This document shows positions 2,977 to 64,000 of a stretch of DNA of 64,000 bases, one piece after another. Below the pieces are notes generated by a model. The model had not been told where the DNA came from, searched no databases, and was given only the letters and a program-made list of their open reading frames with translations. Source of the stretch: Octopus sinensis (lineage: Eukaryota); the NCBI RefSeq assembly GCF_006345805.1, contig NC_043023.1, positions 10,974,001-11,038,000 of the forward strand, read 5' to 3'. The position numbers and the translations under genes were made by a program. Positions within the stretch are counted from its first letter, which is position 1, and every line of letters begins with the position of its first letter.

Positions 2977-2996
2977 ATATATATTATATAATATAC

Positions 2997-3035
<39 letters not shown>

Positions 3036-3140
3036 ATACATATATATATATTATATACATATATATATACATATAATATATATATATACATATATATATA
3101 CATATATATATAATATATACATATAATATTATACATATAT

Positions 3141-3173
<33 letters not shown>

Positions 3174-3226
3174 CATATACATATATATATATATATATAC
3201 ATAATATATATATACATATATACATA

Positions 3227-3257
<31 letters not shown>

Positions 3258-3305
3258 CATATATATACATATATATATATATATATACATATATATATAC
3301 ACATA
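2977..3305. repeat. (TA)n/(TACA)n microsatellite
   Basis: Interrupted TA dinucleotide run between the LINE 5' end and a SINE head. Confidence 0.95.
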
Positions 3306-3468
3306 TACGAAGGGCTTCTTTCAGTTTCCGTCTACCAAATCCACTCACAAGGCTTAAGTCGGCCCAAGGCTATAGTAGAAGACACTTGCCCAAGGTGCCC
3401 CGCAGTGGGACTGAACCCGGAACCATGTGGTTGGTAAACAAGCTACTTACCACACAGCCACTCCTGCG
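3306..3468 (-). mobile_element. tRNA-derived SINE family A (CORE-like, OR2-like), 5' half
   Basis: Reverse complement of the head GGCGCAGGAGTGGCTGTGTGGTAAGTAGC...CCTTGGGCAAGTGTCTTCTACTATAGC seen in the full copy at 12415-12820. Confidence 0.8.
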
Positions 3469-3469
3469 G

Positions 3470-3625
3470 GTAGGTCAGAAAATTTTCATACGGCTGGAGG
3501 CTCCAATCGAAACAGGGGACCCGAAATGATATGGTTGAGAAACGCTGTTCTAGATTATGCCTAACCGAAAACGATCACAACCACATCATCCAAAGGGACC
3601 GGGTGAAACCGGGCTTAGCTGCTAG
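3470..3625 (+). mobile_element. Helitron-like 3' end
   Basis: Small hairpin CCGGGTGAAACCGG followed by CTAG|T at 3622-3626. Confidence 0.45.
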
Positions 3626-3823
3626 TATTATATAAACAGAAGACCAAGGGAGATAAGCAAGTACACGAGACCAATTTCAGTCAATCAGAATTTGGTCTTT
3701 TGATGGCTTTACGTTTATAACGGTCGGGGGATCTCCACTGTTTAATGGTGATTCAATGGTTTGATAAACTGATTTACCAGCTTCTGAATTTATGTGTATT
3801 TGGTTAAGAATTCCTACTGTTAA

Positions 3824-4052
3824 CCTGGCAGAAACGTTAGCAAGCCGGGCGAAATGCGTAGCCGTATTCCGTCTGTCGTTACGTTCCGAGTTCAAATTCC
3901 GCCGAGGTCGACTTTGCCTTTCATCCTTTCGAGGTCGATAAATTAAGTACCAGTTACGCACTGGGGATCAATGTAATCGACTTAATCCGTTTGTCTGTCC
4001 TTGTTTGTCCCCTCTGTGTTTAACCCCTTGTGGGTAGTAAAGAAATATATTT
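3824..4052 (+). mobile_element. tRNA-derived SINE family B (Nin/Deu-like central domain)
   Basis: CTGGCAGAAACGTTAGC head, GAGTTCAAATTCC B-box-like motif, GCCTTTCATCCTTTCGAGGTCGATAAATTAAGTACCAG central domain, GGGTAGTAAAGAAA tail. Confidence 0.8.
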
Positions 4053-4324
4053 CCTAGGATTATATGGCTGCAGTTGTGACAAAGGTTAAATAGTTTGGTT
4101 TCAATGCTACTGAGGCACTTTGGGTGTCTTTTACTATAGCTCTGAGCCCTGTGAGTGGATTTCACGTGCAAAAACTGAGAGGGGAATATACTGAATAAAA
4201 CCATAATTAACTGAATCCCCTGTATTTTCTTTTACCCAAAGCCAGGAACTTTTCAGGGCTTGTATTGAGAGAAAAATTAGGCATAAAGGGAGTCAGATGT
4301 AGCATGAAAGAAAGGACTGTGATG

Positions 4325-4725
4325 ATCTTTTCTACTCTAGGCACAAGGCCCGAAATTTTTGGGGAGGTGTTGCAGTCGATTAGATCGACCCCAGTATGCA
4401 ACTGGTACTTAATTTATCGACCCTGAAAGGATGAAAGGCAAAGTTGACCTCGGCGGAATTTGAAATCAGAATGTAGAGACAGACGAAATACTGCTAAGCA
4501 TTTTGCCTGGCATGCTAACATTTCTTATTTCTTTATTGCCTTCAAGGGGTTAACCATAGAGAGGACAAAGGGATTAAGTCGATTACATTGGCCCCACTGG
4601 TACTTAATTTATCGACCCCAAAAGGATGGAAGGCAAAGGTGACCTTGGTGGAATTTGAACTCAGAATGTAATGGCAAACAAAATACCACTAAGGACTTGG
4701 CCCTGTGTGCTAACATCTTGCCAGC
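4325..4725 (-). mobile_element. Two adjacent diverged SINE family B copies
   Basis: Reverse-complement matches to the 3824-4052 copy. Confidence 0.7.
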
Positions 4726-4835
4726 TCGCCATCTTAGGACTGTAATGATCTGGTCATGGGGTGTATGGATGAGGAGTGGTAATCATTTAAAGTGGATGGA
4801 ACTTATGGAAGAGGGCTGGATGGATGCGGCCATGC

Positions 4836-5190
4836 TGGGGCACCGCCTTTAGTCGAGCAAATCAACCCCAGGACTTATTCTTTGGAAGCCTAGTACTTAT
4901 TCTATCGGTCTCTGTTGCCGAACTGCTAAGCAACGGTGACGTAAACACACCAGCATCGGTTGTCAAGTGATGTTGGTGGGGACAAACACAGACACACATA
5001 CACACACACATACATATATATGCATATACATATGTACGATGGGCTTCTTTCAGTTTCCGTCGACCAAATCCACTCACAAGGCTTTGGTCGGCCCGAGGCT
5101 ATAGCAGAAGACACTTGCCCAAGTAACCACGCAGTGGGACTGAACCCGGAACCATGTGGTTAGTAAGCAAGCTACTTACCACACAGCCAC
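4836..5190 (-). mobile_element. SINE family A
   Basis: Head, CORE-like segment, internal (CA/TA) tract and 3' body match 12415-12820. Confidence 0.85.
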
Positions 5191-5208
5191 AATTAGCTTG
5201 AAACAATT

Positions 5209-5625
5209 ATCATCATCATCATCATTTAACGTCTGCTTTCCATGCTAGCATGGGTTGGACGATTTTGACTGAGGGTTGGCAAACCAGATGGCTGCACCAG
5301 GCTCCAATCTTGATCTGGCAGAGTTTCTACAGCTGGATGCCCTTCCTAATGCCAACCACTCTGAGAGTGTAGTGGGTGCTTTTTACATGCCACCGGCATG
5401 GGGGCCAGTCAGGCGGTACTGGTAACGACCTTGCTCGAATCTTTTTACATATGCCACCGGCACAGGTGCCAGTAAGGCAATGCTGGTAACGATCACACTT
5501 GAATGGTGCCTTTTACGTGTCACCGGCACAGAAGCCAGTTAGCCGCTCTGGCAACAATCACGCTCGGATGGTGCTCTTAGCACCCTACTAGCACGAGCAC
5601 AAGTGCCAGTAAGGCAACACTGGGA
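5209..5625 (-). mobile_element. RTE LINE 3' end (variant subfamily)
   Basis: (CAT)n tail and reverse complement of TTGGCATTAGGAAGGGCATCCAGCTGTAGAAAC, matching the 3' UTR at 39160-39683. Confidence 0.85.
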
Positions 5626-5869
5626 ATAAATAATCATTATATTTGATAGAATGCATGCTAAAAAGTTAAATCAAGACATTTTTTGTATACAGATAAAAGC
5701 AACAAGTGTAGACACAGATTTAAAAAAATCCTTTATTGTAAAAGATGCAATCTGGAGTATAGTAATAAGTTTTGGGCAATATACCAAAGGGTACTTTCAA
5801 TTCAATATCGAGATGAGGACACCACTTCAACTAATACATAATACAAGGATACTTTGATAAACGATTTTT

Positions 5870-6602
5870 ATAACCCTTTTGTTACTAATCCGGCCAAACC
5901 AGCTCTGGCTCTGAGTACAAATGTCTTGTTTCCATAAGTTTTGAATTAAAATCTTCCACCAAACATTAATCACAATTTATGTTCCTAACACTAGCTGTAT
6001 GGTAACTAAGTTATTTTACTAAATTCTTTGTTATATTTAAAATTAATTGAAAGAAACACAGAGCATCTCAACAGAAATATGGTAACAAAAGGCTTAAAAA
6101 TATATAATAGAGAAACAATTCTTAACCCTTTTGATACCAACCCTGCTGAAACCGCCTCTGACTCTGTGTATAAATGTCTTGTCTTTGTAAGTTTTGAATT
6201 AAAACCTTTCACCAAACCTTAGTCACTATTTATGTTCCTAATACTAGCTTAATGATAACTAAGTTATTTTACTAAATTCTTTGTTATATTTAAAATTAAT
6301 TGAAAGAAACACAGAGCATCTTGACGGAATACAGTAACGAAAGGGTTAAAATATATAATAGAGAAACAATTCTTAACCCTTTTGATACCAACCCTGCTGA
6401 AACTGCCTTTGGCTCTTTAGTACAAATGTCTTGTTTTCATAAGTTTTGAATTAAAATCTTCCACCAAACCTTAGTCACAATTTATGTTCCTAACACTAGC
6501 TTAATGATAACGAAGTTATTTTACTAAATTCTTTGTTATATTTAAAATTAATTGAAAGAAACACAGAACATCTCAACAGAAATACAGTAACGAAAGAGTT
6601 AA
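5870..6602 (+). mobile_element. Tandem array of 3 piggyBac-like MITEs (about 220 bp each)
   Basis: Each unit is TTAA|CCCTTT(T/C)G(T/A)TAC...GTAAC(A/G)AAAGG(G/C)|TTAA; units are separated by the same ~24-bp spacer. Confidence 0.8.
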
Positions 6603-6772
6603 ACTGACCGTATTTGGCTCAAATATTCTACTTGCTTTAAGTTCACACTGGTCAGATCCAGCCTCTCACACCTATCCAAGAGCATCATTTTGAAAATAAA
6701 CAACCAAACCATCAAGGGCTACAAGATAATGCAGGAGTAATTCAAAACAATATCAATATATATATATATAAA

Positions 6773-7274
6773 CTAGCAGTATCGCCCGGCGTTGCTCGGG
6801 TTTGTAAGGGAAATAACTATATAAGCATTTTTAGAGAGTTATAGCCAAAAAATAGCAAAAAAAATGCATTAAAATGGAAAAAAAATTATGGTAAATTTTT
6901 TTTTAAATCGTTGACTCATCGTAGACATTTTTATAGAGTTACTTCCCTCATGTAATAGCGAAAAAAATGCATTAAAATGGAAAAAAAATTATGGTAAATT
7001 TTTTTTTAATCGTTGACTCATCGTAGACATTTTTAGAGAGTTACTTCCCTCATGTAATAGCGAAAAAAATGCATTAAAATGGAAAAAAATGATGGTAACT
7101 TTTTTTTTAAATCGTAGACTCATCGTAGACGCGCGCTTAATACCCAGAAGGGCTCGATATGAATAACGACTATAAGATACCCGGTTTTGGTTAAACTGCA
7201 CCGCAAAATGTGGGAGTAGTTAGGAATCTAAATCGTAGGAGACAGACACACAACTTCACTTTTATATATAAAGA
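6773..7274 (-). mobile_element. Non-autonomous Helitron-like element
   Basis: On the minus strand: A|TC 5' end, 3' hairpin ACCCGAGCAACGCCGGGC followed by CTAG|T; internal ~118-bp tandem repeat. Confidence 0.8.
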
Positions 7275-7454
7275 TTTGACAGTAGTCTGAATGCCAAAGG
7301 GTTATACTACAAGGTGTCTGGGCTAAATTTGACAATATTTGATGCCTCTTTTTTTTTTTTTTTTTTATGTGTTGGAGAGCATAAATGTTAAAGGTGAGTT
7401 GAGAAAAAGATAGCTGACATAGAGGACCGGAAGCGATCTGAATATTCTTTTCTA

Positions 7455-8256
<802 letters not shown>

Positions 8257-9606
8257 TCATCCTGTATGAGTCCGATTGTGTTTAGTTAAACTTCTTCTTT
8301 GAGAGAATGATTTACCACAAATATCACAGTGATATGGTTTCTCAACCGCATGAATATGCTTGTGTTGAGTTAAGTAACCAGCATGCGACAGTGGTTTACC
8401 ACAGACATCACACAGATGTTTCTCTCCGCGATGGGTGTTTGTGTGAATAGTTAGGCTACCTTTATGAGAGAATGATTTATCACAGATGTCACAATGAAAT
8501 GGTTTCTCACCTGTGTGAATGCGTATGTGGGAAGTTAAATGATCCTTTCGAAGGAATGATTTGCCACAAATATCACAGCGATATGATTTTTCTTCTGAAT
8601 GGATACGTTTGTGTTTAGTTAAGTTGCCATTCAGAGTGAATGACTTACCACAGATAGCACAGTGATATGGTTTCTCGCCTGTATGAATGGTCTTGTGTCT
8701 ATCCAAGACTGTACCATCAGAGAATGATTTACCGCAGGTATCACAGTGATATGGTTTCTCTCCTGTATGAATGCGTTTGTGTCGAGTCAAGATTGTAGTG
8801 TCACAGAATGATTTACCACAAATATCACAGTGATATGGTTTCTCTCCAGTATGAATATATTTGTGTTTATTTAAATTGCCATTATGGCAGAAAGCCTTCC
8901 CGCAGATGTCACAGTGAAACGGCTTCTCTTCAGCATGAATGTATTTGTGTCTATTTAAGTCACTTCTTTGAGTGAATGATTTACCACAGGTATCGCAGTG
9001 ATGTTGTCTCTCTCCTGTATGAATATGCATGTGTTTGGTGAAGCGGCTTTCATCAGAGAAAGATTTATCGCAGATATCACAGTGATATGGTTTTTCTACA
9101 GAGTGAATACGTTTATGTTTAGTTAAGGTGCTTTTCTCTGAGAATGATTTACCACAGAAATCACAGACATATGGCTTTTCCCCTGTATGAATGCGTATGT
9201 GGCTAGTTAAGTGATCGCTCTGAGAAAAAGACTGACCACAGACATCACAGTGATATGGTTTTTCTCCTGTATGAGTACGTTTGTGCCTAGATAAGGCACC
9301 ATTTCGAGAGAACGATTTATCACAGACATCACAATGATATGGTTTCTCTCCTGTGTGAATAAACTTATGTTTAGTTACACTGCTACTCTGAGAGAACGAT
9401 TTACCACAGATATTACAGTGATATCGTTTCTCCCCTGTATGGATATTTTTGTGTTTGGTTAGGCTGCTCCTTTTAGAAAATGATTTACCACAGATATCAC
9501 AATGGTATGATGGTTTTCCTTCCTCAGAATTTATATCATCAGGTAACTCAATCTTTTTAGTCTCCGTTTCACATTCAACCTTGATCTCATTTAACTCACA
9601 TTCCAT
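8257..9606 (-). CDS. C2H2 zinc-finger protein, 449 aa, 15 tandem fingers, single coding exon
   Basis: 15 CxxC-x12-HxxxH units with TGEKPY-type linkers. First ATG (MECELNE) at 9606; the longer ORF in the track starts at a TTG inside a SINE. Candidate splice acceptor TTATTTCAG at 10370-10378 (minus strand). Confidence 0.92.
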
Positions 9607-9642
9607 AATTTTTCTTTCCTTACTACAATATACAGACGATTT

Positions 9643-10027
9643 AGTGGAGGCGCGATGGCCCAATGGTCAGGGCAGCGGACTCGCGGTCATAGGATCGCGG
9701 TTTTGATTCCCAGACCGGGCGTTGTGAGTGTTTATTGAGCGAAAACACCTAAAGCTCCACGAGGCTCTGGCAGGGGATGGTGGTGATCCCTGCTGTACTC
9801 TTTCACCACAACCTTCTCTCACTCTTACTTTCTGTTTCTGTTGTACCTGTATTTGAAAGGGCCGACCTTGTCACTCTCTGTGTCACGCTGAATATCCCCG
9901 AGAACTACGTTAAGGGTACACGTGTCCGTGGAGTGCTCAGCCACTTACACGTTAATTTCACGAGCAGGCTGCTCCGTTGATTCGGTTCAACCGGAACCCT
10001 CATCGTCGTAACCGACGGAGTGCTTCC
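9643..10027 (+). mobile_element. tRNA-derived SINE family C with 13-bp TSD
   Basis: tRNA-like head GTGGAGGCGCGATGGCCCAATGGTCAGGGC; TSD ATACAGACGATTT at 9630-9642 and 10028-10040. Confidence 0.88.
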
Positions 10028-36045: not shown

Positions 36046-39000
36046 ATGAATTCTGCCAAACGCGAGTTTTCTTTTCAGGTTCATGATGCTACTAGGTCCA
36101 ATGCTTCCCACTCCCTCAGGATTGGCACCCTCAACGTTGGCACACTGAAAGGCAGATCTGGCGAGATCGTTGAATTGCTTGAACGAAGGTGTGTGGATAT
36201 ATGCTGTGTTCAAGAGGTGAGGTGGAGAGGAGGTTCTGCTAGGTTCCTCACAGGTAAAGGACAGAGGTACAAGATTTTCTGGGCTGGGAATACTGAAGGG
36301 GTCGGGGGAGTAGGTATGCTTATTGCCGAAAAATGGGTAGGTAAGGTAATCGAGGTAGTCAGAGTATGTGACAGAATACTGAAGATTAGTTTAGTGCTCC
36401 ATCATATTTCAGCAACTATTATATCGGCCTATGCCCCTCAGCCAGGGCTACCCGATGGACAGAAAGACTGTTTCTATGACACCCTACTGCAGACCACCTC
36501 ACTGACGAACGACAGGGACCTTCTCTTTGTGGATGGTGACTTCAATGGGCATGTTGGACGATATGCTGAGGGCTTCTATGGCATTCATGGAGGCTATGGT
36601 TATGGTTCTCGCAATGAGGAGGGAACCAGGCTGCTGGAGTTCTGTGATGTGAATAGTCTTATGGTTTGCAACACTAACTTCAGGAAACCGACAAGCCACT
36701 TGGTCACCTACTTTCGGGCCAGCATACTAGCCAAATCGACTACATCCTTACCAGAAAAAGGGAAAGATGGCTGCTTATAAATGCCAAAACCTTCCCAAGC
36801 GAAGAGTGTACCCCACAACATAGACTGGTAGTTAGTGACTTTAGAATCAGGACTAAGAGGACGACTAGAAGACGACCAACATGGAGAAGAAGGGTCTGGA
36901 AGCTTAAAGACCCTGCAAATGGACAGAGATTTAGAGACATGTTACTTGAAGTCTTCCACGAAATAGAAGGGGGTATAGCTACACATGGGGTAGAAGATAA
37001 CTGGGCGCTTCTAAGGGACAACCTGCTGAAAGCCACAGACCAGATCTGTGGCTGGTGCAAAGTCCCCACAAGACCCAAAATAACGTGGTGGTGGAACAAT
37101 ACTGTTGACAGGGCTATTAGACAAAAGAAACAGGCTTGGAAGGACTGGAAGAACGGTGGTAGCAGGGAAGTGTATCAGACTGCAAGAAGGGAGGCTAGGA
37201 GGCAGGTGTATTTAGCCAGAGGGGAAGCAGATAAGAAAAAATTTGCCAATGTCCTGCGCCGTGAAGATGAAAGACTTGAGGTATTTCGTGTTGCAAGACA
37301 GTGTGTGAGAGAGAATCGTGACGTGGTAGGAGAGAAATGTGTTCGCAAGGATGACAGCTCACTTGCGCTAAATGAGGATGCAAAGAGAGAGGTTTGGAGA
37401 CGCCACTATGAAAGGTTGCTGAATGAGGAAAATGAATGGGATAAAGAGAGTCTGCCGAATGTTGACCCAACAGAGGGACCAGCAATCCGAGTTGACAGTT
37501 CCTTAGTAGATAAGGCAATTAGAAGCATGAAAACAGGGAAAGCCCCAGGCCCATCAGGAATTACTGCAGAGATGCTCAAAATATCTGGTAGTGCTGGCTA
37601 TAGCCTAGTCACCCGTATAGTTAACTAGGTGATACACGAAGGAGTCATTCCCAATGACTGGTGTAGCAGCATAATAGTTAACTGCTACAAAGGTAAAGGT
37701 GACGCCCTAGATACAAATAACTACAGGGGTATCAAGCTGCTAGATCAGGTAATGAAGGTAACGGAGAGGGTCATAGCCCAACTAATTAGAGAGAGAGTTA
37801 GTTTAGATGAGATGCAGTTTGGGTTCGTGCCAGGGAAAAGTACTACTGATGCTATTTTCCTGGTAAGACAGCTGCAGGAGAAATACCTAACCAAAGATAA
37901 GCCCTTGTACCTGGCTTTTGTTGACTTGGAGAAAGCCTTTGACAGGGTCCCCCGATCCCTTATCTGGTGGTCAATGAGGAAACTAGGGATAGATGAATGG
38001 TTAGTTAGAGCTGTGCAAGCCATGTACAGAGACACTGCTAGTAAGGTGAGGGTTGGCAACAAGTACAGTGAAGAATTCCGGGTAGAGGTTGGGGTCCACC
38101 AAGGTTCAGTCCTCAGTCCCCTCCTATTTATCATAGTCCTCCAGGCAATAACAGAGGAATTCAAGACAGGATGCCCCTGGGAGCTCCTCTATGCTGATGA
38201 CCTTGCTCTAATTGCTGAGTCACTATCAGAACTGGAGGAGAAGTTTCAGGTGTGGAAACAAGGATTAGAATCGAAGGGCCTTAGAATCAACCTAGCCAAA
38301 ACCAAAGTCCTAATAAGTAGGAAGGTGGACCAATCACAAACGACTTCAGGTAGATGGTCCTGCTCGATCTGTAAAAAAGGTGTAGGTAGAAACTCTATAA
38401 GGTGCACCAAGTGTAAGCTATGGACACATAAGAGGTGCAGCAATGTCAAAGGAAGGCTAACTAGGAAAATAGTTTTTGTCTGTGGCAGATGCTCAGGAGC
38501 AATAAACACCGGAAATGTGCAGAGACCAACTTCTACCACGTTCCAGGGAGACAAACTAGAAGTAGTTGATAGCTTCCGCTACCTAGGAGACCAAGTCAGT
38601 AGCGGGGTGGGTGTGCTGAAAGTGTAACTGCTAGAGTAAGAATAGCCTGAGCAAAGTTTAGAGAGCTCTTACCCCTGTTGGTGACAAAAGGCCTCTCGCT
38701 CAGAGTAAAAGGCAGACTGTATGATGCATGTGTACGTACAGCCATGCTACATGGTAGTGAAACATGGGCCGTGACTGCTGAGGATATGCGTAAGCTCGCA
38801 AGAAATGAAGCCAGTATGCTCCGATGTATGTGTAATGTCAGTATTCATAATCGTCAGAGTGTAAGTACCTTGAGAGAAAAGTTGAACCTAAGAAGCGTCA
38901 GTTGTGGTGTGCAAGAGAGACGGCTGCGCTGGTATGGTCATGTGACGAGAATGGCTGAAGATAGTTGTGTGCAAAAGCGCTACACCCTAGCAGTTGAGGG

Positions 39001-39683
39001 AACCTGTGGAAGAGGTAGACCCAGGAAAACCTGGGACGAGGTGGTGAAGCACGACCTTCGAACTTTAGGTCTCACCAAGGAAATGACTAGTGACCAAGAC
39101 CTATGGAAGTATGCTGTGCGTGAGAAGACCCGACAAGACGAGTCAGGCCATAACCCGTGACCCCTACCTGGGACGTAGTCAGTCCACCTGTGCATACCTT
39201 CCTTCTTGTGACACTTGTGAAGACCTGTTGAGGCAAGTGAAAATCAAAACAAATCAAAATAGATGAACATCAATGGAATTTGTATCTTTGTGGTATCAGT
39301 GCCGGGGGCACACAAGAAAACCATCCGAACGTGGCCATAGCCAGTACCGCATCGACTGGCCTCCGTGCTGTGGGCACGTAACAAACACCATCCGATCGTG
39401 GCCGTTCGCCAGCCTCATCTGGCACCTGTGTCGGTGGCACATAAAAACACCATCCGAGCATGGCCGTTCGCCAGCCTCGTCTGGCACCTGTGTCGGTGGC
39501 ACATAAAATCACCCACTACACTCTCGGAGTGGTTGGCGTTAGGAAGGGCATCCAGCTGTAGAAACACTGCCAGATCTGACTGGCCTGGTGCAGCCTTCGA
39601 GCTCCCCAGACCCCAGTTGAACCGTCCAACCCATGCTAGCATGGAAAGCGGACGTTAAATGATGATGATGATGATGATGATGA
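36046..39683 (+). mobile_element. Near full-length RTE-clade LINE (APE, RT, PHD-like finger, 3' UTR repeat), inactivated
   Basis: APE motifs (GTLNVGTL, QEVRW, YAPQ, GDFNGHVG, IDYIL); RT motifs (NYRGIKL, QFGF, DLEKAFDRV, GVHQGSVLSP, YADD); C-terminal GRGRPRKTW. Lesions: frameshift near 36712, TAG at 37626, frameshift near 38603, TGA at 38648. Ends in a (GAT)n tail. Confidence 0.95.
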
Positions 39684-50599: not shown

Positions 50600-51853
50600 G
50601 GATCTTTTCCTTTTGAACGGCAGTTTTCAACACAATTTCTAGTTAACTAATCACTTTTAAACTTCGTATACTGGGTAGAATGTGTCAATTTCATATGACA
50701 CCACTACGGAAAATGGGATTTTTTTCTAGCAGTGTCAAATGAAATTGTCACCCATAATTATAACCCTAGTATCGATCTATTGCATTTCAATCTATTTTAG
50801 GGTTAGGTTTAGAGTTATGGTTAGAGGTGGGGGAAGGGTATCTTTTTTCTTCGCAAATGTAAATAAACCCAATCTGTTTCTTAAATGCGGGACATATTCA
50901 TATGGCACAGAATGTTGTTTACGTCAATGGAGGTCAGCGATTGGTTAAAATTGCCGAAATGCTCAAAATTAAAGTCGAAATATCTTACAAACTATAGAAT
51001 TTTCTCAAGAAAGCCAAGAGAAAAAGATGTTTTATAAACACATTCTACCAGTATACGAAGCTTAAAAGTGTTTAGTTACAAGGAAATTATTTTTAAAAAC
51101 TGCCGTTCAAACCGAAAAGACCCAAATATCTTACAAACTATAGAATTTTCTCAATAAAGTCAAGAGAAAAAGATGTTTTATAAACACATTCTACCAGTAT
51201 ACGAAGTTTAAAAGTGTTTAGTTACATGGAAATTATTTTAAAAAACTGCCGTTCAAACCGAAAAGACCCAAATATCTTACAAACTATAGAGTTTTCTCAA
51301 TAAAGCCAAGAGAAAAAGATATTTTATAAACACATTCTACCAGTATACGAAGTTTAAAAGTGTTTAGTTACGTGGAAATTATTTTTAAAAAACTGCCATT
51401 CAAACCGAAAAGACCCAAATATCTTACAAACTATAGAATTTTCTCAATAAAGCCAAGAAAAAATGATGTTTTATGAACACATTCTACCAGTATACGAAGT
51501 TTAAAAGTGTTTAGTTACATGGAAATTATTTTAAAAAACTGCTGTTCAAACCGAAAAGACCCAAATATCTTACAAACTATACAATTTTCTCAATAAAGCC
51601 AAGAGAAAAAGATATTTTATAAACACATTCTACCAGTATACGAAGTTTAAAAGTGTTTAGTTACGTGGAAATTATTTTAAAAAACTGCCGTTCAAACCGA
51701 AAAGACCCAAATATCTTACAAACTATAGAATTTTCTCAATAAAGCCAAGAGAAAAAGATGTTTTATAAACACATTCTACCAGTATACGAAGTTTAAAAGT
51801 GTTTAGTTAACTAGAAATTGTGTTGAAAACTGCCGGTTAAACGGAAAAGATCC
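50600..51853. mobile_element. Merlin-like MITE with about 6 tandem 145-bp terminal units, 8-bp TSD
   Basis: TSD GACTCATC at 50592-50599 and 51854-51861; each unit ends in the TIR sequence. Confidence 0.85.
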
Positions 51854-52637: not shown

Positions 52638-52988
52638 TTACTCTTTTACTTGTTTCAGTCATTTGACTGCGGCCATGCTGGAGCACTGCCTTTAGTCGAG
52701 CAAATCGACCCCTGGACTTATTCTTTGTAAGCCTAGTACTTATTCTATTGGTCTCTTTTGCCGAACTGCTAAGTTTACTCTTTTACTTGTTTCAGTCATT
52801 TGACTGAGGCCATGCTGGAGCACCGCCTTTAGTCGAGCAAATCGACCCGAGGACTTATTCTTTGTAAGCCCAGGACTTATTCCATTGGTCTCTTTCGCCG
52901 AACTGCTAAGTTACAGGGACGTAAACACACCAGCATCGGTTGTCAAGTGATGTTGGGGGGACAAATACAGACACAAACATATACACAC

Positions 52989-53067
<79 letters not shown>

Positions 53068-53232
53068 TACGACAGGCTTCTTTCAGTTTCCGTCTACCAA
53101 ATCCACTCACAAGGCTTTGGTCGGCCCGAGGCTATAGCAGGAGACACTTGCCCAAAATGCCATGCAGTGGGACTGAACCCAGAACCATGTTGTTGGTTAG
53201 CAAGCTACTTTCCACACATCTACTCCTGTGCC
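52638..53232 (-). mobile_element. SINE family A with duplicated ~137-bp 3' end
   Basis: About 52638-52775 is repeated at about 52776-52915. Confidence 0.8.
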
Positions 53233-53640: not shown

Positions 53641-54544
53641 AAATGAACTTTCTTATCTTCCATTTTAAAGGGTTACAGAATTAACACAAGTTATAGGAAC
53701 ATAAACCTTTTCCCACGAAAAGATAGCTTAAACTGTGCTCTAAATGGAGGTGTAGTCAAATCCTATTTTATGGATTCAACCATGTTCTAAAATAAATCAA
53801 AAGGTAAGCTACTATAAATTGGCATGAGCTTTCCAGACAACCCAATATCTTCAAGTCTTATTTCTAGTGATTATTATATGGAAAACAATTTGTCTAATGT
53901 AAAGTATACTAGCCATCTCAGTATGGCTAACCACTGAGGGTGGGTGTTACTGTAGCTTTTAGCCCCAGGAGATCATCGTCTCCAGCTGGCTTTAGGCACA
54001 CTTTCTGTGCCCTAATGATATTTGCAAAGGGAGGTCATCCCTCTCTCGTCAACCTAAGTGATACGCATGGACTGCAGTTTCTAGGTATTTGCCTCTTGTC
54101 AACGTACGGTAATCACCAGTTTTCGATGAAAGGGGGACCTGTTTGCAAATATTTAATGTTTTACCGAGTAACCTCTGTCACTGATTTCGAAAAACTGTCT
54201 GCAAGCAATAATAAATCTCTGAACGAGATGTAAACAGTAACCGCTCAACAACGTAAAGTATACTAGCCATCTCAATATGGCTAACCACTAAGGGTGGGTG
54301 TTACTGTAGCTTTATATTTGTCTAATATATTTAATGAAATGTGTGTTTTCAGTGAAATTGTTTGAAAAATGAAGTAAATATTTTATCAAAAACTTTTCAT
54401 GAAACTAATAAATTTTTCTTTTTTAATTTCAGCTTTGGCTTAAAGGGTAGTGAATTGTGAAGACAAATTTTATTCTGAATCAATGAACAAAATTTAGAGA
54501 ATAAATAAATATTTGATAGAGAGAGATAATTCTATATTCGTAAA

Positions 54545-57500
54545 ATGGAGAAGATTAATGAAGAAAACAAAATGTTGGCTCTCACTCTTGTTGCAGACAG
54601 TGATGCAACACTAATTCATAAGGAAACTATACCAATTCTTCCCCGAATATTACATACACAAAACACAAAGAAAACTGAAGGACGGAAAACACAATACACA
54701 ATGACAATTGAAAAACAGGAAATGTCCATATTACCAAATTTTCTTCATATTGTGACATGTTACCTAACAATTATCAAAACAGACCACATCAATACGTTTA
54801 TAGATTTTGTAAAGGATAAATGTAATAACATAGAGTCTATGGGTTTAGACGGATCCTTTATCTTATGTAATATCAAGCATAAAATGCAAAAGTTTCTGGA
54901 ATTTACCAAACAGTATAATGATTTTGTCCACCAAAATCTCGAATGGTTTCAACAAAGACTCTTTGACATTTATGTCACATGTAACCCATACAGCCACAAG
55001 TTTGTTGGGGCACCAAAAATAACAACAAAATTTCGACCACTTTGTCAGATCGTGACACGAGAAGCAAAGATCAATGAATCTCGTAAAGACTCAGGCAACA
55101 ACACAATATCTAATATTGTTATCATACAAACGGGAATAGTAACGTATTCCCATCACTGTATGACAATATCTTGTATCACAAAAGATGGTGACAGAAATGA
55201 TGTTCATTGCCCATCTCCTGTCACCGATTTTACCAGGATCGCTCAAGACACTGTATTGGCCACCCTCCCCTTTAAACAAATGATTCTTATTATCAATTCC
55301 GTAAGCTTTATAATCAAAACACTTCCATTGGGTTTCTATAAAGTTTCTTACGTAGAACTTTCTACATTTATAGGTGTAGAAATGTTCAGTAAAACCATCT
55401 ACCTTGTGGACTGGGTTGATAATAAAATTGTAAGTCAATTCCTAGCCAAAGAGGTACCTACGGATATTGCTGTAGGTGCAGGAAATAAATTACTGTTATC
55501 ATTTCCCAGTATTAGCAGAGTTACCTGTTACAATCTGGCTGGCCTGCAGTTGTTTGAGGTAGAGACACATTATCTGAACTTAGTAATGCAAGTCACGCTG
55601 TACCAAAACCATTTTTATGTCCTCCAAGGACATATCATTTATAGGATTTCAACCACAGGCGGTGTGACCATGAGAGACATTGGCATGAAATGCCGTTCTG
55701 TTTCTGTTTGTAGAGATGCCATTTTTGTAACAGATGATTTTGGTGTACCTCATATGGTTACAACAAATAAAGACTTTTGGCCCAGGCTGTCATATAACCA
55801 TCAGCGGTGTTCCCCCAGTTTGAGCAACCATTTTTATATAGAAGATTGCTACAACATTACAAATATTCTACCTATGGCAACATCTTCTACATTAATAATC
55901 TACAGGAATAAGAAAGCTTTAGTATTCACTGATACTGGAGAAATAATTAGCAAAAATAATTTAACTTTCCTTGAGTTTCCTTCTGTTTTATGTAGAATAA
56001 ACTCAAACAGATTCCTGGTCTTTTATCGTGAAATGAAAGGACTTCAGTATATCACCTATCCTGAACTAACCGAAGGCCCTTTAATAAAGGTCCACACTAA
56101 TTACATTACCATATGTCATATTGTATTAAATAAGTTTTTAGCTCTGACCACCAGTGGAAACAAACATGAGGTACATATCCTATTGATCAAAGAGGACAAA
56201 GTTAACGTGATAGAAAGAATTTCTCTTGGACATTTTAATGTCACCATTGCTGCAACTCCAGTTAATTTTGTTGTCGTAGATGGAAGGGAAAACAAACTGA
56301 TATTTTATTTGACATCTGGTGAAGAACTTTTTGAAAAATACCTTCCATTCTATGGTTCCTCTTATTTCATCTACTCTGATAATATTTATTTTTATGTCCT
56401 GTTCAAGAGACACTCTATTGTGATATGTTATGATATATATGGAGACATTAGATGGCAGTGGAAACTGCCTTTCCCTGTTCACCCTGACATTGCTGTTTTT
56501 CAGGGGACTATTTATGTGCTGGATACTGAACTCAACAGGGTTCTTCTTTACAAGAATCATGACCGGTCGTCTGGCTGTTTTTTACACTTGAAAAATCCTT
56601 ATATCAGAAATCTAAATATACGACTCAAAGAAAAAGGGAATGTCAAACTTCTCATTGCCGAAATATGTCATCTGTCCAATGGGCAGTTGGTGGTGTCTGA
56701 CATCAACCATGATTGCTTGTTATACATTTCTAATGAAGGAGACATTGTGTCTAGATTATCTCTGCCGTCTACAGCTACAGATATATGTCGATGGAACCCT
56801 AATCAAATAGGTGTCATCTTACCCCTAGAGAAACAATTAAGGATTATCGAAAACCTATCAGAGACAGTTAGAACTGTATCATTAAGCCAGCCTTATGTAC
56901 GGGTGTGCAAGCTGGGCAAAGATAAAATTGCTTGTTATTCTGATAAACCATCTCATTTAGATATTTTAGCCATTAAAAATTATAATCAAGTTGAAATAAT
57001 TCATAGGATTAATATCACTTTTGTAGTGAAATCGTTAGCAATAGAAAATGAAACTCAAAAACTATTAATTGTTACTAGAGGAAAGGCTTTTCAGTACAAC
57101 ACTAGTTTCGGTGATGGTTGTCATAGCAGTGGTGATCGTCTTTGTAGTATTAAGATGGTCCCCAGGGTTTTACTGTCCCAAGTGAAATGCCCTCCCAATT
57201 TCTATGCTGGGTCTATTGATAAAACTTTTGTCTATCTGATAGACAACAGCCGTATGTTTGCTATAAACGATTATAATTTGATGGTTAATGATCTCATTAC
57301 AAATAATCAACTTAATATTTATATCGACCTGGTAGATGTATTTTCCAGAAACATTTGTGTCAGTGAAATGTTATCTTCTACATTATATCTACAGGATCTG
57401 ACAGTTTCTGATAAGGCTAGACACATTCCTCTTTCTCAGAGTTTCGGAGACGAACAACCGATGAGGATTCATTGTCTGGTTATTACTGAAAATAACCTGA

Positions 57501-58858
57501 TTGCAGGATATGACTGGCAAAATAAAAACATTAAGATATTCACGTTTGATGGTCAAGTTCTGGATTCTGTCAAATGGAATGCTTTTGGCTTTCTCAAAAT
57601 GTGTCGATGGCAGTCAAACACATTGGTTATTACGGACGGTGATTGCATTGATAATAAATACCAACTGTTGACATTAAAAGTGGAATTTCCATTGTCGTTG
57701 GTAATTTATCAGACAGAAAATAGATATGACTGTATCACTTCTTTATCAAACAATCAACTGGTGTGTAGTAAATGGAGAGATTTATATAGTGTCTATGTTG
57801 TTGAAATCGATGAAATACATTCGACTTTGAATGAAATAAAACAAATAGCCATACCTGAAACATTATCACCAAGAAACGAACTTGGTAATAGAAATTTTAT
57901 CACTGATATACATGATATTACAGTTACTGCTGAAGATATCATCATTGTCTTAAACAAAAGATTCATCATTTTCTTCAACCGTGATGGTCAGTATCTACAT
58001 TCAGTTAGACACTACATAAAGTATGTCGGTCATAATGACATGATGACAGTTGATGACAGTTTATTGTACATTCAAGCAGCATGGGATAAATGTTCTAGTT
58101 ACTTTGGATATAGAAGCATTGTGTGTTTGACACAGGCTGGGGAATACAGCGGAATACTTTTAAATAAAAGAATTCATCGAGCTAAACTAAGTTACCCCAG
58201 TATAAACTGTAAGGGACCAAGGTTTGTTGGAAGCTACTACCCAAGGAATGAATTGTATGTTCAAGGTCTGTTTATTGTTAATCGAGAAAGCTTTTCTGTT
58301 GCTCGTTTACAAACAGACGAATGTCCTGTTGAAGTAAAAGATTTTGATATCTCTGATGAAGGGAAGATAGTTGTGTGTGAAAAAGCCAATAATGGAAATG
58401 TTAAAATATTTTATGAAAGCGGGGAGTTGCTATGTCACAGAAATATTGCAAGTTTAGTTGGTGGTGTGTGTTTTACAGAAGAAAGAGACATAATGACCAC
58501 AGTTTCTAAAACACAAGAAATATTTCAACTGAATCGAAAAGATTTGGAGAAATTTAAAGTTTGGCAAAGTCAAGTACCTTATGGTGTAATATGGAGAAAA
58601 GTGGGAAATATTTACTGGTGTGTACATATTGAATTAACTGAATGTCATTGCATAAAGATTGATGGGGACCAAGTGAACATTCTGGAATCTGTGTCGTTAT
58701 TAAATCTTGATTCTGGTCTTCATTTCTCTTCCATTACATCTCAGATGAACAAGGAAATATTCAGTAATGAATTAATTAATAAGTTGAATTACAGTGCAGG
58801 ATTTGTCAGAGGTGGAAGAAGTGGTAAAACAGGTAAAAAAATTGTAAAAGTAGATTAA
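54545..58858 (+). CDS. 1437-aa protein of tandem beta-propeller-like (NHL/TolB-like) modules
   Basis: 4.3-kb stop-free frame in AT-rich DNA with blade-like motifs (PTDIAVGAGNKLLLS; IAEICHLSNGQLVVSDINHDCLLYISNEGDIVSRLSLPSTATDICRW; VKDFDISDEGKIVVCE). Acceptor TTTTAATTTCAG at 54421-54432 precedes the ATG. Confidence 0.85.
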   Translation: MEKINEENKMLALTLVADSDATLIHKETIPILPRILHTQNTKKTEGRKTQYTMTIEKQEMSILPNFLHIVTCYLTIIKTDHINTFIDFVKDKCNNIESMGLDGSFILCNIKHKMQKFLEFTKQYNDFVHQNLEWFQQRLFDIYVTCNPYSHKFVGAPKITTKFRPLCQIVTREAKINESRKDSGNNTISNIVIIQTGIVTYSHHCMTISCITKDGDRNDVHCPSPVTDFTRIAQDTVLATLPFKQMILIINSVSFIIKTLPLGFYKVSYVELSTFIGVEMFSKTIYLVDWVDNKIVSQFLAKEVPTDIAVGAGNKLLLSFPSISRVTCYNLAGLQLFEVETHYLNLVMQVTLYQNHFYVLQGHIIYRISTTGGVTMRDIGMKCRSVSVCRDAIFVTDDFGVPHMVTTNKDFWPRLSYNHQRCSPSLSNHFYIEDCYNITNILPMATSSTLIIYRNKKALVFTDTGEIISKNNLTFLEFPSVLCRINSNRFLVFYREMKGLQYITYPELTEGPLIKVHTNYITICHIVLNKFLALTTSGNKHEVHILLIKEDKVNVIERISLGHFNVTIAATPVNFVVVDGRENKLIFYLTSGEELFEKYLPFYGSSYFIYSDNIYFYVLFKRHSIVICYDIYGDIRWQWKLPFPVHPDIAVFQGTIYVLDTELNRVLLYKNHDRSSGCFLHLKNPYIRNLNIRLKEKGNVKLLIAEICHLSNGQLVVSDINHDCLLYISNEGDIVSRLSLPSTATDICRWNPNQIGVILPLEKQLRIIENLSETVRTVSLSQPYVRVCKLGKDKIACYSDKPSHLDILAIKNYNQVEIIHRINITFVVKSLAIENETQKLLIVTRGKAFQYNTSFGDGCHSSGDRLCSIKMVPRVLLSQVKCPPNFYAGSIDKTFVYLIDNSRMFAINDYNLMVNDLITNNQLNIYIDLVDVFSRNICVSEMLSSTLYLQDLTVSDKARHIPLSQSFGDEQPMRIHCLVITENNLIAGYDWQNKNIKIFTFDGQVLDSVKWNAFGFLKMCRWQSNTLVITDGDCIDNKYQLLTLKVEFPLSLVIYQTENRYDCITSLSNNQLVCSKWRDLYSVYVVEIDEIHSTLNEIKQIAIPETLSPRNELGNRNFITDIHDITVTAEDIIIVLNKRFIIFFNRDGQYLHSVRHYIKYVGHNDMMTVDDSLLYIQAAWDKCSSYFGYRSIVCLTQAGEYSGILLNKRIHRAKLSYPSINCKGPRFVGSYYPRNELYVQGLFIVNRESFSVARLQTDECPVEVKDFDISDEGKIVVCEKANNGNVKIFYESGELLCHRNIASLVGGVCFTEERDIMTTVSKTQEIFQLNRKDLEKFKVWQSQVPYGVIWRKVGNIYWCVHIELTECHCIKIDGDQVNILESVSLLNLDSGLHFSSITSQMNKEIFSNELINKLNYSAGFVRGGRSGKTGKKIVKVD

Positions 58859-58860
58859 AG

Positions 58861-59940
58861 GTGAGATGTGGTAATTACATAGCGGAGAGTATGTTAGGAA
58901 TTGATGAAATATCAGTGAGGCAACTGCCATATAGAACAGCAATGGTCCCTCTTTCCATTCCTACATTCGATGAACCTGTTAATTATAATTTTATAGACAT
59001 TAAGGACCGGAACAGTAAGCTAATTAAGTTAGATAACGATGTCAGTGTGTTGATGTTTAGAGAAACTCTCACGTTAATCAGTGCAACAGGTGACATACTC
59101 CAACATAAACAACTGCCACAACAACAACCACATCTGGACATATGTCAGTGGAAAGATGAACAGTTCATAGTTGTCTTTGGTAAAGAAATGATGGTCTTCA
59201 ACAGAAATCTCTGTCGTTTAAAAACCATCAAAACAGAGAAATACTATAACACAATTTATAAATACAATGATAATCAAATTGTGTGTGGTGGTCATTATAT
59301 TGGAGATATAACTCAAAACGAGAGAAACAAGAATTACGAAAAAGAAATCTACAACAACAGATTTTATTACTTCTGCAAAGACCCCGATGCCTGCGACTCT
59401 TATTATGTGGATGTAGTTGATATCAATGATGGGGAAATCAAATATGAAGTGTGTCGTGGGAAGACGAAGGTGTTGGGAAAATTAGAGGGAGAGGCAGTCG
59501 TGTTTGATGTAGGAGTCACAACTTTTGGTGATGTTATTGTTGTGAGGAGGGAGACGAAAAAGATGGAGTTGGGAAGGTGGGCTGATTTATGTTTTGTTGA
59601 ATGGTACAGAGAAAAGTCGTTGGTCAGAAGGATAGCGCTAGAAGGAAAATATTACGTCGGAGATAATATTCACAGACCTCGTCTAATCGCAGTTGGTAAA
59701 AATGTTTATATAAGAGACAGAAAAAACAGTATTTATCAAATACCTGGACATATTGAACAAGAAACATCTGAAGATTCTGAAGATCTGACATTAAAAGATA
59801 TTAAAAAATATTCACTCCTTAAGCAGGGTGATAATGAGGTCTTCCACGTTCTTGGTTTTGATATTTCAGAAAATTCTTTCATGGTTTTTGGAATTATTCC
59901 AGGACGTCAATCTTTTGCTTTCTTTTTTTATGACAAATAA
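58861..59940 (+). CDS. 359-codon ORF, probable C-terminal continuation (sixth propeller-like module) of the 54545 ORF
   Basis: Starts 2 nt after the upstream stop, in the -1 frame, and is open from 58837. Contains LTLISATGDILQHKQLP...LDICQWKDEQFIVVF, similar to the upstream modules. AATAAA at 59936-59941. Confidence 0.75.
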   Translation: MRCGNYIAESMLGIDEISVRQLPYRTAMVPLSIPTFDEPVNYNFIDIKDRNSKLIKLDNDVSVLMFRETLTLISATGDILQHKQLPQQQPHLDICQWKDEQFIVVFGKEMMVFNRNLCRLKTIKTEKYYNTIYKYNDNQIVCGGHYIGDITQNERNKNYEKEIYNNRFYYFCKDPDACDSYYVDVVDINDGEIKYEVCRGKTKVLGKLEGEAVVFDVGVTTFGDVIVVRRETKKMELGRWADLCFVEWYREKSLVRRIALEGKYYVGDNIHRPRLIAVGKNVYIRDRKNSIYQIPGHIEQETSEDSEDLTLKDIKKYSLLKQGDNEVFHVLGFDISENSFMVFGIIPGRQSFAFFFYDK

Positions 59941-60179
59941 ATATTTTCATAAATATTAGACTTTGATGTTGTTAACATTATTATTTAATTGGATTAATCC
60001 AGGAATTGAACCTGCATCCCTTACGTTGCATTGTACACATTAACACTTATTCTTGTAACATACTTCAACATGCACACAATCTCTCTATATAAATTTGTAT
60101 ACAATATTTGGTACATGTATATATAAAGTAATGAAAATACCCCTTCGTATGTATGTATATATGTGTGTGTGTGTATACT

Positions 60180-60548
60180 CTCTTTACTCTTTTACTTGTT
60201 TCAGTCATTCGACTGTGGCCATGCTGGAGCACCACATTTAGTCGAGCAAATTGACCCCGGGACTTATTCGTTGTAAACCTAGAACTTATTCTATCGATCT
60301 CTTTTGCTGAACCGCTAAGTGACGGGGAGGTAACCAAACCGACATCGGTTATCAAGCAATGTTGGGGTGTGGGGGGCAAACACAGACACAATCATAAACA
60401 CACACATACATACATACATATATATGCAACGGGTTTCTTTCAGTTTCCGTCTACCAAATCCACTCACAAGGCATTGGTTGGCCCGAGGCTATAGTAGAAG
60501 ACACTTGCCCAAGTTGCCACGCAGTGGGACTGAACCCGGAACCATGTG
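60180..60548 (-). mobile_element. SINE family A
   Basis: Matches 12415-12820. Confidence 0.8.
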
Positions 60549-61039
60549 GTATCTTTTTTTCTTCAGAAATGTAAATAAACCCAATCTGTTTCTTAAACGA
60601 AGGACATATTCATACGGCACAGAATGTTTTCACCTCAATAGACGTCATTGATTGGTTGAAATTGCAGAAAAAGAACAACAAATATCTTACAAACTATAGA
60701 ATTTTCTCAAGAAAACCAAGAGAAAAAGATGTTTTATAAACACATTCTACCAGTATACGAAGTTTTAAAGTGTTTAGTTACGTGGAAATTATTTTTAAAA
60801 ACTGCCGGTCAAACCGAAAAGATCTGAATGTTTTCACCTCAATAGACGTCATTGATTGGTTGAAATTGCAGAAATTGAAGAAAAAACAACAACAAATAGC
60901 TTACAAACCATAGAATTTTCTCAATAAAGCCAAGAGAAAAAGGTGTTTTATAAACACATTCTACCAGTATACGAAGTTTAAAAGTGTTTAGTTACGTGGA
61001 AATTATTTTAAAAAACTGCCGGTCAAACCGAAAAGATCC
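60549..61039. mobile_element. Partial Merlin-like MITE with duplicated end
   Basis: Two copies of the terminal region ending CCGAAAAGATC. Confidence 0.75.
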
Positions 61040-62489: not shown

Positions 62490-64000
62490 ATGGAAGACGT
62501 TAAGGACTTGGACACTTCTACCACAACTGATTTTACCGATGTAGATTCAGCAACATCGATAGAGAGAGACGAGAAACCTTTATGGAGTGAACTATTTATT
62601 AATCAAGCATCGATAATTGGAACTATTCCAAAATATTGCTGTGAGATTTGTGGGAAAACCTTCGATTCTGAACAGGATTTCTTCACGCATAAAGACGCAC
62701 ACAATAAGGACAAACCATTCCATTGTGAAATATGTGGGAAATATTTTGCATATAACAGTTATTTCATAAGTCATCAACGAATCCATACAGGGGAAAAGCC
62801 GTATCATTGCGAGATATGTGAGAAGTCTTTCACTCAGAATTCTCACCTTGTTATCCACATACGTAGCCATACGGGGGAGAAACTATTTCGCTGTGAGATA
62901 TGTGATAAATCCTTTGTTTCCAACAGCAATTTAACAAAACATAGGCGAATCCACACGGGGGAAAAACCGTATCATTGTGAAATCTGCTTCAAGTCTTTCG
63001 TCTCAAATTGTAAATTAACCAGACACAAGCGGATTCATACGGGCGAAAGACCGTACCATTGTGAAACGTGCGGTGAATCTTTCATCTGTAGTAGTGTTTT
63101 AAACAGACATAAACGGATCCACACGGATGCCAAGCTTTTTCAGTGTGAAATCTGTGAGAAAACCTTCTTTGATCATGCTAATCTTGTCATTCACGAACGG
63201 ATCCATTCCGGAGAGAAGCCGTTTGCCTGTGAAATCTGCGGAAAAGCATTCATTACTAATTCTAAGGTTACGATCCACAAACGGAGTCACACTGGGGAGA
63301 AACTGTTCCCCTGTGAAATCTGTTGGAAGTCTTTTGTCTCTAATAATGTCTTGACGAAACACAAACGAATTCATACTGGAGAAAAGAACTTCCATTGTGA
63401 AGTGTGTGCGAAAGCGTTTGGTACTAACAGTGATTTAATCAGACACCGACGAATCCACACGGGGGAGAAACCATACCACTGTGACATCTGTGGGAAATCC
63501 TTTACTCAGAATTCTTGCCTTGTTATTCACACTCGTAGCCATTCGGGATTGAAACCGTATCACTGTGAAGTGTGCGGGAAATCTTTTGTTGATAATAGTA
63601 ATCTAAACAGACACAGACAAACACATGCTAAAGAGAAAGCTTTTAACTTTAAAACTGTGGTAGAGGCTAAGCCTTTTAACCATGACACTTCGGCAGAAGC
63701 TAAGGTTTTTATCTATGGAACTTCAGCAGAACCTGAGCCTTTTAACCATGAAACTTCGGTAGAAGCTAAGGCTTTTAACTGTGAAACTTCGGTAGAGGCT
63801 AAGCCTTTTAACTCTGAAACTGTGGTAGAAGCTAAGCCTTTTAACTATAAAACTTCAGTAGAAGCTAAGGCTTTTAACCGTGAAACTTTGGAAGTGGCAA
63901 AGCCTTCAAAATGTGAAACTTCGGTAGAGGCTAAGCCTTTAAACTGTGAAACTTTGGAAGAGGCTAAACCTTCAAACTGTGAAACTTTGGAAGAGGCTAA
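62490..64000 (+). CDS. C2H2 zinc-finger protein (12 fingers plus 11-aa repeat tail), 3' partial
   Basis: Acceptor TTTTTGTCTCAG at 62461-62472 and ATG at 62490 (MEDVKDLD). 12 CxxC-x12-HxxxH fingers at about 62634-63626. No stop before the window end, which is why it is absent from the ORF track. Confidence 0.92.

Follow-up and report, generated by a model that had tools for sequence, protein, structure and literature searches.

What makes a long open reading frame (ORF) of Octopus sinensis end just behind a run of adenines, with a second ORF continuing in the -1 frame? The question is raised by a locus in the window, the term used here for the whole stretch of 64,000 nucleotides (nt) that was analyzed (chromosome CM016885.1 of assembly GCA_006345805.1, positions 10,974,001-11,038,000; all features below are numbered from its first letter). 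ORF1 occupies 54545-58858 of the forward strand, encodes 1437 amino acids (aa) and ends on GGT AAA AAA ATT GTA AAA GTA GAT TAA, with a run of seven adenines (A7) at 58835-58841 and the stop codon TAA at 58856-58858. In the -1 frame, a TAA at 58834-58836 is followed by ORF2, which opens at 58837 and stays free of stops for 367 codons until the one at 59938-59940, and the overlap of the two ORFs is 22 nt only. Recomputation reproduced all coordinates of an original prediction made from the letters alone (end of ORF1, A7, -1 frame, GT and AG sites, position of a donor-like site), and likewise its claim that one extra base fuses the two ORFs into 5397 nt, corresponding to 1798 codons plus stop, which is in the length range of the intact relatives (1780-1801 aa). 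We conclude that the locus almost certainly is one gene with one missing base, with neither splicing nor recoding involved. ORF1 and ORF2 would then be the two parts of an intron-less coding sequence of ~5.4 kb for a protein of ~1798 aa, built as a chain of beta-propeller-like domains.

Reading frames across the junction

Alignment of the O. vulgaris paralogue P0004 to the window by tblastn placed its residues 1-1429 at 54545-58843 (frame 2, 68.7% identity) and its residues 1431-1798 at 58846-59937 (frame 1); exactly one residue is lost at the junction, and the frame change is confined to 58841-58846. P0004 itself is encoded by one unbroken ORF of 5397 nt (positions 2001-7397 of the paralogous locus L002), and the coding sequence is therefore devoid of introns. 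The full-length relatives cross the junction in one frame with the pattern …G-(K/E)-(K/I)-I-x-K-(G/S)-R-L-K-V-R-C-G-N-Y-I-A-E…, and in all of the more than 20 paralogues …GEII-x-KGRLKVRCGNYIAE… spans the junction. In the window, the -1 frame contains, from 58846 onward and ahead of the last domain, the linker motif K-x-R-L-K-V-R-C-G-N-Y-I-A-E. Judged by this homology, the open -1 frame is not a product of chance but the counterpart of the C-terminal part of the proteins matched by ORF1. The gene is thereby divided into 1433 N-terminal codons in the family frame (54545-58843), predicted to form all-beta, propeller-like modules, and 365 C-terminal codons in the -1 frame (58843-59940), which start with C-K-S-R-L-K-V-R-C-G-N-Y-I-A-E and would encode the last beta-propeller-like domain. 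Relative to L002, ORF1 and ORF2 have similar ratios of non-synonymous to synonymous change (dN/dS, omega; 0.57 and 0.62, respectively), which indicates that both halves share a long-term selective history. Thus, the window copy is collinear with the family over its full length, while the single unbroken ORF of ~1780-1800 codons that marks the family is split in it by a -1 change at 58842-58843.

The same alignments bear on the idea that ORF1 and ORF2 are two separate neighbouring genes, with ORF2 expressed on its own. An in-frame GTG (58861) and ATG codons near the start of ORF2 could be cited in its favor, but the family-conserved residues of the -1 frame set in at 58843, ahead of every possible start codon, the two ORFs are fused in all full-length relatives, and the 2 nt between the stop of ORF1 and the first candidate start leave no space for a promoter; we regard this arrangement as having hardly any probability. 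A promoter and terminator scan was empty, but it used bacterial models on eukaryotic DNA and is irrelevant here.

The missing base can be located by comparison with the O. vulgaris orthologue (locus L001, OX597842.1:22,382,952-22,394,348, assembly GCA_951406725.2), whose gene of 5397 nt differs from the 5396 nt in the window by 23 substitutions and three one-base indels (99.5% identity). At the junction, the orthologue reads GGT AAA AAA ATT TGT AAA AGT AGA TTA AAG GTG in one contiguous frame, AAAAAAATTTGT as opposed to AAAAAAATTGT in the window: both have A7, but the orthologue continues with TTT and the window with TT. Since A7 stands in an intact frame in the orthologue, the lesion is a lost T at 58842-58843 and not a contraction of A8 to A7. 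Paralogue L002 reads GGT GAA ATA ATT GGT AAA GGT AGA TTA AAG GTG AGA TGT at this place, with GAA ATA where the other two have A-rich codons, and the A-run is thus specific to the locus shared by window and orthologue. According to this scheme, loss of one T directly 3' of A7 (TTT to TT) would shift translation out of the family frame by -1, resulting in four wrong codons (V K V D, 58844-58858 including the stop) before termination at 58856. The original prediction had proposed that one extra A in the A7 run fuses the ORFs; the notion of a single gene that is one base short holds, whereas the location has to be revised, the lost base being a T beside the run. With a T and not an A lost, polymerase slippage on A7, which had been considered as well, is weakened as an explanation.

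Two further proposals invoked splicing. A GT at 58833-58834 can be combined with an AG at 58896-58897 or 58914-58915 to give introns of 65 or 83 nt (58833-58897 or 58833-58915) whose GT…AG borders restore the frame, though by arithmetic only. Yet the interval encodes the family-conserved KxRLKVRCGNYIAE, so that removal of either intron would delete 21-27 residues, this motif and with it residues conserved in every paralogue among them (…KGRLKVRCGNYIAE…); both AGs are preceded by purine-rich sequence without a pyrimidine tract, and the relatives are single ORFs without an intron at this position (L002 2001-7397), the span 58833-58915 being coding in all of them. The strong donor AAG/GTGAGA, which begins 2 nt past the ORF1 stop and had been considered the basis of a short isoform, did not stand up as a signal either: its hexamer (58861-58866) is conserved coding sequence, AAG GTG AGA representing the K-V-R codons, and L001 has exactly the same hexamer, as does paralogue L002, which shares 80% identity overall. 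Moreover, no splicing would be required to produce a truncated ORF1 protein. Taken together, we consider the chance that a short intron joins the frames, or that the donor at 58861 generates an isoform, to be practically nil.

Recoding would restore the frame at the level of expression, either by RNA polymerase adding an A on A7 or by a ribosomal -1 shift, so that the TT allele would still yield some full-length protein. The family frame is indeed regained with an additional A (giving G K K N C K S R L K V…) or with a -1 shift within 58835-58843, and A-runs are slippage-prone templates. On the other hand, A7 is short for appreciable slippage in eukaryotes. The zero frame reads GGT AAA AAA ATT and does not present a slippery heptamer X XXY YYZ in phase, in agreement with the original prediction. 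A stimulatory fold downstream is lacking as well: for 58842-58930 (89 nt) we obtained a folding energy of -11.4 kcal/mol versus -11.44 kcal/mol for shuffled sequences (z = 0.02). Finally, the two-frame layout is found neither in the orthologue, whose A7 lies in a contiguous frame, nor in any paralogue, these being without the A-run. Slippage on A7 may occur at trace level only, and nothing suggests that it is used; recoding is accordingly very improbable in our view.

A young allele or a consensus error

With one gene and one missing T as the preferred reading, the remaining issue is whether the T is absent from the animal or from the assembly. We lean very slightly towards a genuine young mutation in O. 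sinensis, fixed or segregating, and assign it about half of the total weight; a consensus error, with a true O. sinensis genome that has TTT and an intact ORF of 1798 codons and a break that exists only in GCA_006345805.1, is given somewhat less than an even chance, and a small remainder is left for everything else. A genuinely mutated copy would be a dispensable member of a birth-and-death gene family, present as a null allele or as the source of a 1437-aa product without the last propeller domain.

One argument for a genuine mutation derives from the orthologue, since L001 harbors two one-base frameshifts of its own at other places: an extra A at 3964 and T4 versus T5 at 4784 (OX597842.1 ~22,386,915 and ~22,387,735, equivalent to window positions 55507 and 56328). 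These are +1 and -1 changes 820 nt apart, with 22 stops in between. The O. vulgaris assembly is reported at a consensus quality value of 39 (QV39; PMC10700109), from which ~0.7 errors are expected per 5.4 kb; the two L001 frameshifts are therefore probably not both errors, which makes the locus look dispensable, and errors alone would be a strained explanation for all three lesions. Indels between the two copies amount to three in the 5.4-kb ORF versus 11 internal ones in ~6 kb of flanks (1.8 per kb), the density in the ORF being about one third. With a heterozygosity of 1.22% in the species complex (PMC10700109), the flank density is about what real polymorphism would produce, and no large excess of errors has to be assumed. 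In addition, the locus is divergent from its nearest paralogues (~80% nucleotide identity to L002, the only one compared as DNA, and ~70% identity to the closest non-orthologous proteins), so that short-read polishing should have worked here.

There are also hints of relaxed constraint. The dN/dS relative to the orthologue is ~0.9 (15 non-synonymous versus 5 synonymous codons), and the window lineage has serines in place of two prolines (P1321S and P1395S) that 14-15 of 15 paralogues retain. When changes were polarized with these 15 paralogues, three of 13 recent replacements fell on conserved columns versus a long-term expectation of ~11% (binomial p ~0.16 by hand, not significant); since 60 of 667 conserved columns had already diverged from the consensus in the lineage of this locus, the result is only suggestive. 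The window copy shows a frame-disrupting lesion relative to intact relatives, as a pseudogene would, and at the same time a one-base homopolymer-length discrepancy (TT versus TTT) relative to an independent assembly, as an artefact would.

Several points weigh against a genuine mutation and, in part, directly in favor of a consensus error. At the junction, window and orthologue differ by one base in the length of a short T-run adjoining A7, and both assemblies were made from noisy long reads, for which a one-base indel in or beside a homopolymer is the typical residual error: the O. sinensis assembly of Li et al. from 2020 is reportedly based on PacBio long reads, and that of O. vulgaris on Oxford Nanopore R9.4.1 reads polished with Hypo (the latter according to PMC10700109). 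All three ORF-breaking differences are one-base indels, the O. vulgaris ones including T5 versus T4, and each lies elsewhere, as random independent errors would. Apart from them, both copies are free of stops over ~1798 codons, with no nonsense substitution in either, and the roughly threefold lower indel density of the ORF relative to its flanks fits a constrained gene. An omega of 0.9 calculated from 20 changed codons is indistinguishable from the family values of 0.57-0.62, and the conserved-site test, as mentioned, did not reach significance. Many gene models of the family are fragmented in both assemblies. Protein searches with ORF2 and the last 150 aa of ORF1, and exact look-ups of ORF1 and ORF2, yielded no junction sequence from a second assembly or from transcripts.

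Beyond the indels, substitutions between window and orthologue are unevenly distributed, with 14 in the 1.1 kb of ORF2 (1.3%) and nine in the 4.3 kb of ORF1 (0.2%). Synonymous and non-synonymous changes are both raised in the ORF2 part (59147-59718), and six changes fall within 9 nt (59557-59565); the pattern could have arisen by gene conversion, with a paralogue as donor, or by a complex mutation.

If the TT allele is real, its product would consist of 1433 native residues followed by V-K-V-D and would lack one domain. The premature stop is located in the same exon as the remaining coding sequence, and exon-junction-dependent mRNA decay is therefore not expected, which means that the truncated protein could escape this pathway. 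An AATAAA motif (59934-59943) overlaps the ORF2 stop at 59938-59940. We consider it unlikely that the TT allele is not only real but also expressed, with an mRNA that escapes decay and a stable 1437-aa protein without the last propeller. A bolder version of this idea holds that low-level slippage on A7 may additionally restore some full-length product. Were the allele expressed in this manner, a frameshift in a linker that cleanly removes the terminal domain would represent one route of diversification in the octopod propeller family, many of whose gene models are N- or C-terminal pieces.

The octopod family, its annotation and the surroundings of the gene

A protein search with ORF1 returned 47 matches with identities of up to 70%, all from O. 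vulgaris, O. sinensis or O. bimaculoides and with full-length members of 1780-1801 aa. A scan of 1.84 billion representative proteins, carried out without a word index, turned up only 26 relatives, and those that were traced come from Octopus species and from Argonauta hians. Within the databases covered, the family is thus restricted to octopods (Octopus species and Argonauta), examples being O. vulgaris P0003 and P0004, O. sinensis P0022 and A. hians GAB1597371.1; A. hians homologues also occur at 1913-1925 aa. It is a fast-evolving multigene family of the birth-and-death type. One member, encoded at other loci (P0072/P0090/P0091, 1674-1680 aa), has retained at least 90% identity among O. 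vulgaris, O. sinensis and O. bimaculoides (~34 million years), whereas copies of the expanded family differ by 30-50%; this contrast suggests a conserved core gene accompanied by fast-evolving paralogues.

A Pfam scan of both ORFs gave no match at threshold, the best being a WDR90 propeller (E = 0.004) and DUF7385 (E = 0.002). AlphaFold (AF2) models of the junction-spanning paralogue P0048 and of ORF1 residues 238-1437 consist of all-beta modules with low-confidence linkers between them. With both models, Foldseek retrieved multi-propeller proteins (Utp21, DDB1, AIP1 and LRP2/LRP4 arrays) at a probability of 1.0 and E-values down to 1e-18, with TM-scores of 0.1-0.3. We therefore describe the protein as a predicted chain of beta-propellers and take the similarity as a resemblance at the level of the fold only. 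In the P0048 model, the junction corresponds approximately to residue 277 and lies within a low-confidence linker (229-305) that connects the last all-beta domain to the one before it. An intron-less family of ~1800-aa multi-propeller proteins in the Octopoda, including Argonauta, with an omega of ~0.6 may be considered a mildly interesting by-product of this analysis.

Both public annotations already cover the gene, though imperfectly. For O. sinensis, the model P0001 (1164 aa) takes an internal methionine as its start and covers 54884-58375 only; it then leaves the ORF at 58375 and runs on for ~13.8 kb, past the end of the window to the equivalent of 72227 (L003 1001-18344), thereby skipping the junction and ORF2. 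The O. vulgaris model P0002 (1472 aa) reads through the junction, but omits, as an in-frame "intron" of 978 nt (326 codons), precisely the stretch that lies between the two frameshifts of this copy, which are thereby hidden. These structures are annotation work-arounds and not evidence of splicing. The feature that gave rise to our question is an ordinary frameshift or an artefact in a gene already present in the public annotation, and the finding itself matters little; its practical value lies in annotation, as copy numbers and counts of "novel genes" for this octopod family are unreliable until the frameshifts have been checked against reads.

Nucleotide homology to paralogue L002 extends over 54316-60125 (80.6% identity), comprising the gene unit and short flanks resembling untranslated regions (UTRs), and reaches ~230 nt beyond the ORF on the upstream and ~185 nt on the downstream side. 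An acceptor-like site, tttttttaatttcag at 54420-54433, is situated ~110 nt upstream of the ATG and suggests an intron in the 5'-UTR. Copies of direct repeats flank the gene on both sides (50978-51850 and 60622-61038; 52638-53193 versus 60183-60550). One of these repeats is a satellite of ~146 nt with six copies upstream, while Tandem Repeats Finder reports two copies of a 214-nt period downstream; the unit of the other measures ~137-400 nt. Both may be widespread in octopus genomes, or they may have been left behind by the duplication mechanism. An origin of the multicopy ORF from a transposable element gained no support from the extent of homology to L002, the one paralogue compared as DNA, or from blastn of the flanks, which gave direct repeats only and showed no inverted repeats at the termini, although no search aimed at transposon ends was made. 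Farther away, the window contains decayed fragments of non-LTR retrotransposons at 36046-39160 on the forward strand (endonuclease and reverse-transcriptase ORFs in four pieces; RVT_1, E = 5e-33) and at 1684-2805 on the reverse strand (an endonuclease fragment). An ORF of 468 aa at 8257-9663 on the reverse strand encodes ~13 C2H2 zinc fingers in tandem (zf-H2C2_2, E = 5e-115), as is typical of the ZNF expansion in octopuses, and a 33-nt tandem repeat (63640-64000, ~11 copies, 80% match) reaches the end of the window.

Comparison with known systems

The layout of the locus, with an A-rich run just before the -1 overlap of two long ORFs, is reminiscent of programmed -1 frameshifting or polymerase stuttering. 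It differs from these systems in that a phased heptamer and a downstream structure are absent, the overlap measures 22 nt, and the arrangement is not conserved. With respect to the protein, the predicted succession of all-beta domains connected by linkers resembles multi-propeller proteins such as the triple propeller of DDB1, the YWTD arrays of LRP2/LRP4 and the tandem WD40 propellers of Utp21; at 7-12% sequence identity, TM-scores of 0.1-0.3 and with no WD40, YWTD or NHL match in Pfam at threshold, however, this does not amount to family membership.

Residual indels that adjoin homopolymers and break ORFs are a well-known class of artefact in long-read assemblies. In line with this class, the change concerns one base at the boundary of A7 and a T-run, the two assemblies break the ORF at different places, and the breaks have been masked by annotators with fake introns or truncated models. 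Less typical is that the affected run is merely T3 versus T2 and not a long A-run, and multiple errors in 5.4 kb are somewhat unlikely in view of the QV39 reported for the sister assembly. Compared with a young pseudogene or null allele of a lineage-specific birth-and-death family, the window copy has an omega indistinguishable from the ~0.6 of the family and carries no second lesion. Nevertheless, a lesion that consists of one single-base indel when set against intact relatives, two halves that are both still free of stops, a family with many truncated copies and a dN/dS near 1 relative to the orthologue are features that the locus has in common with such genes.

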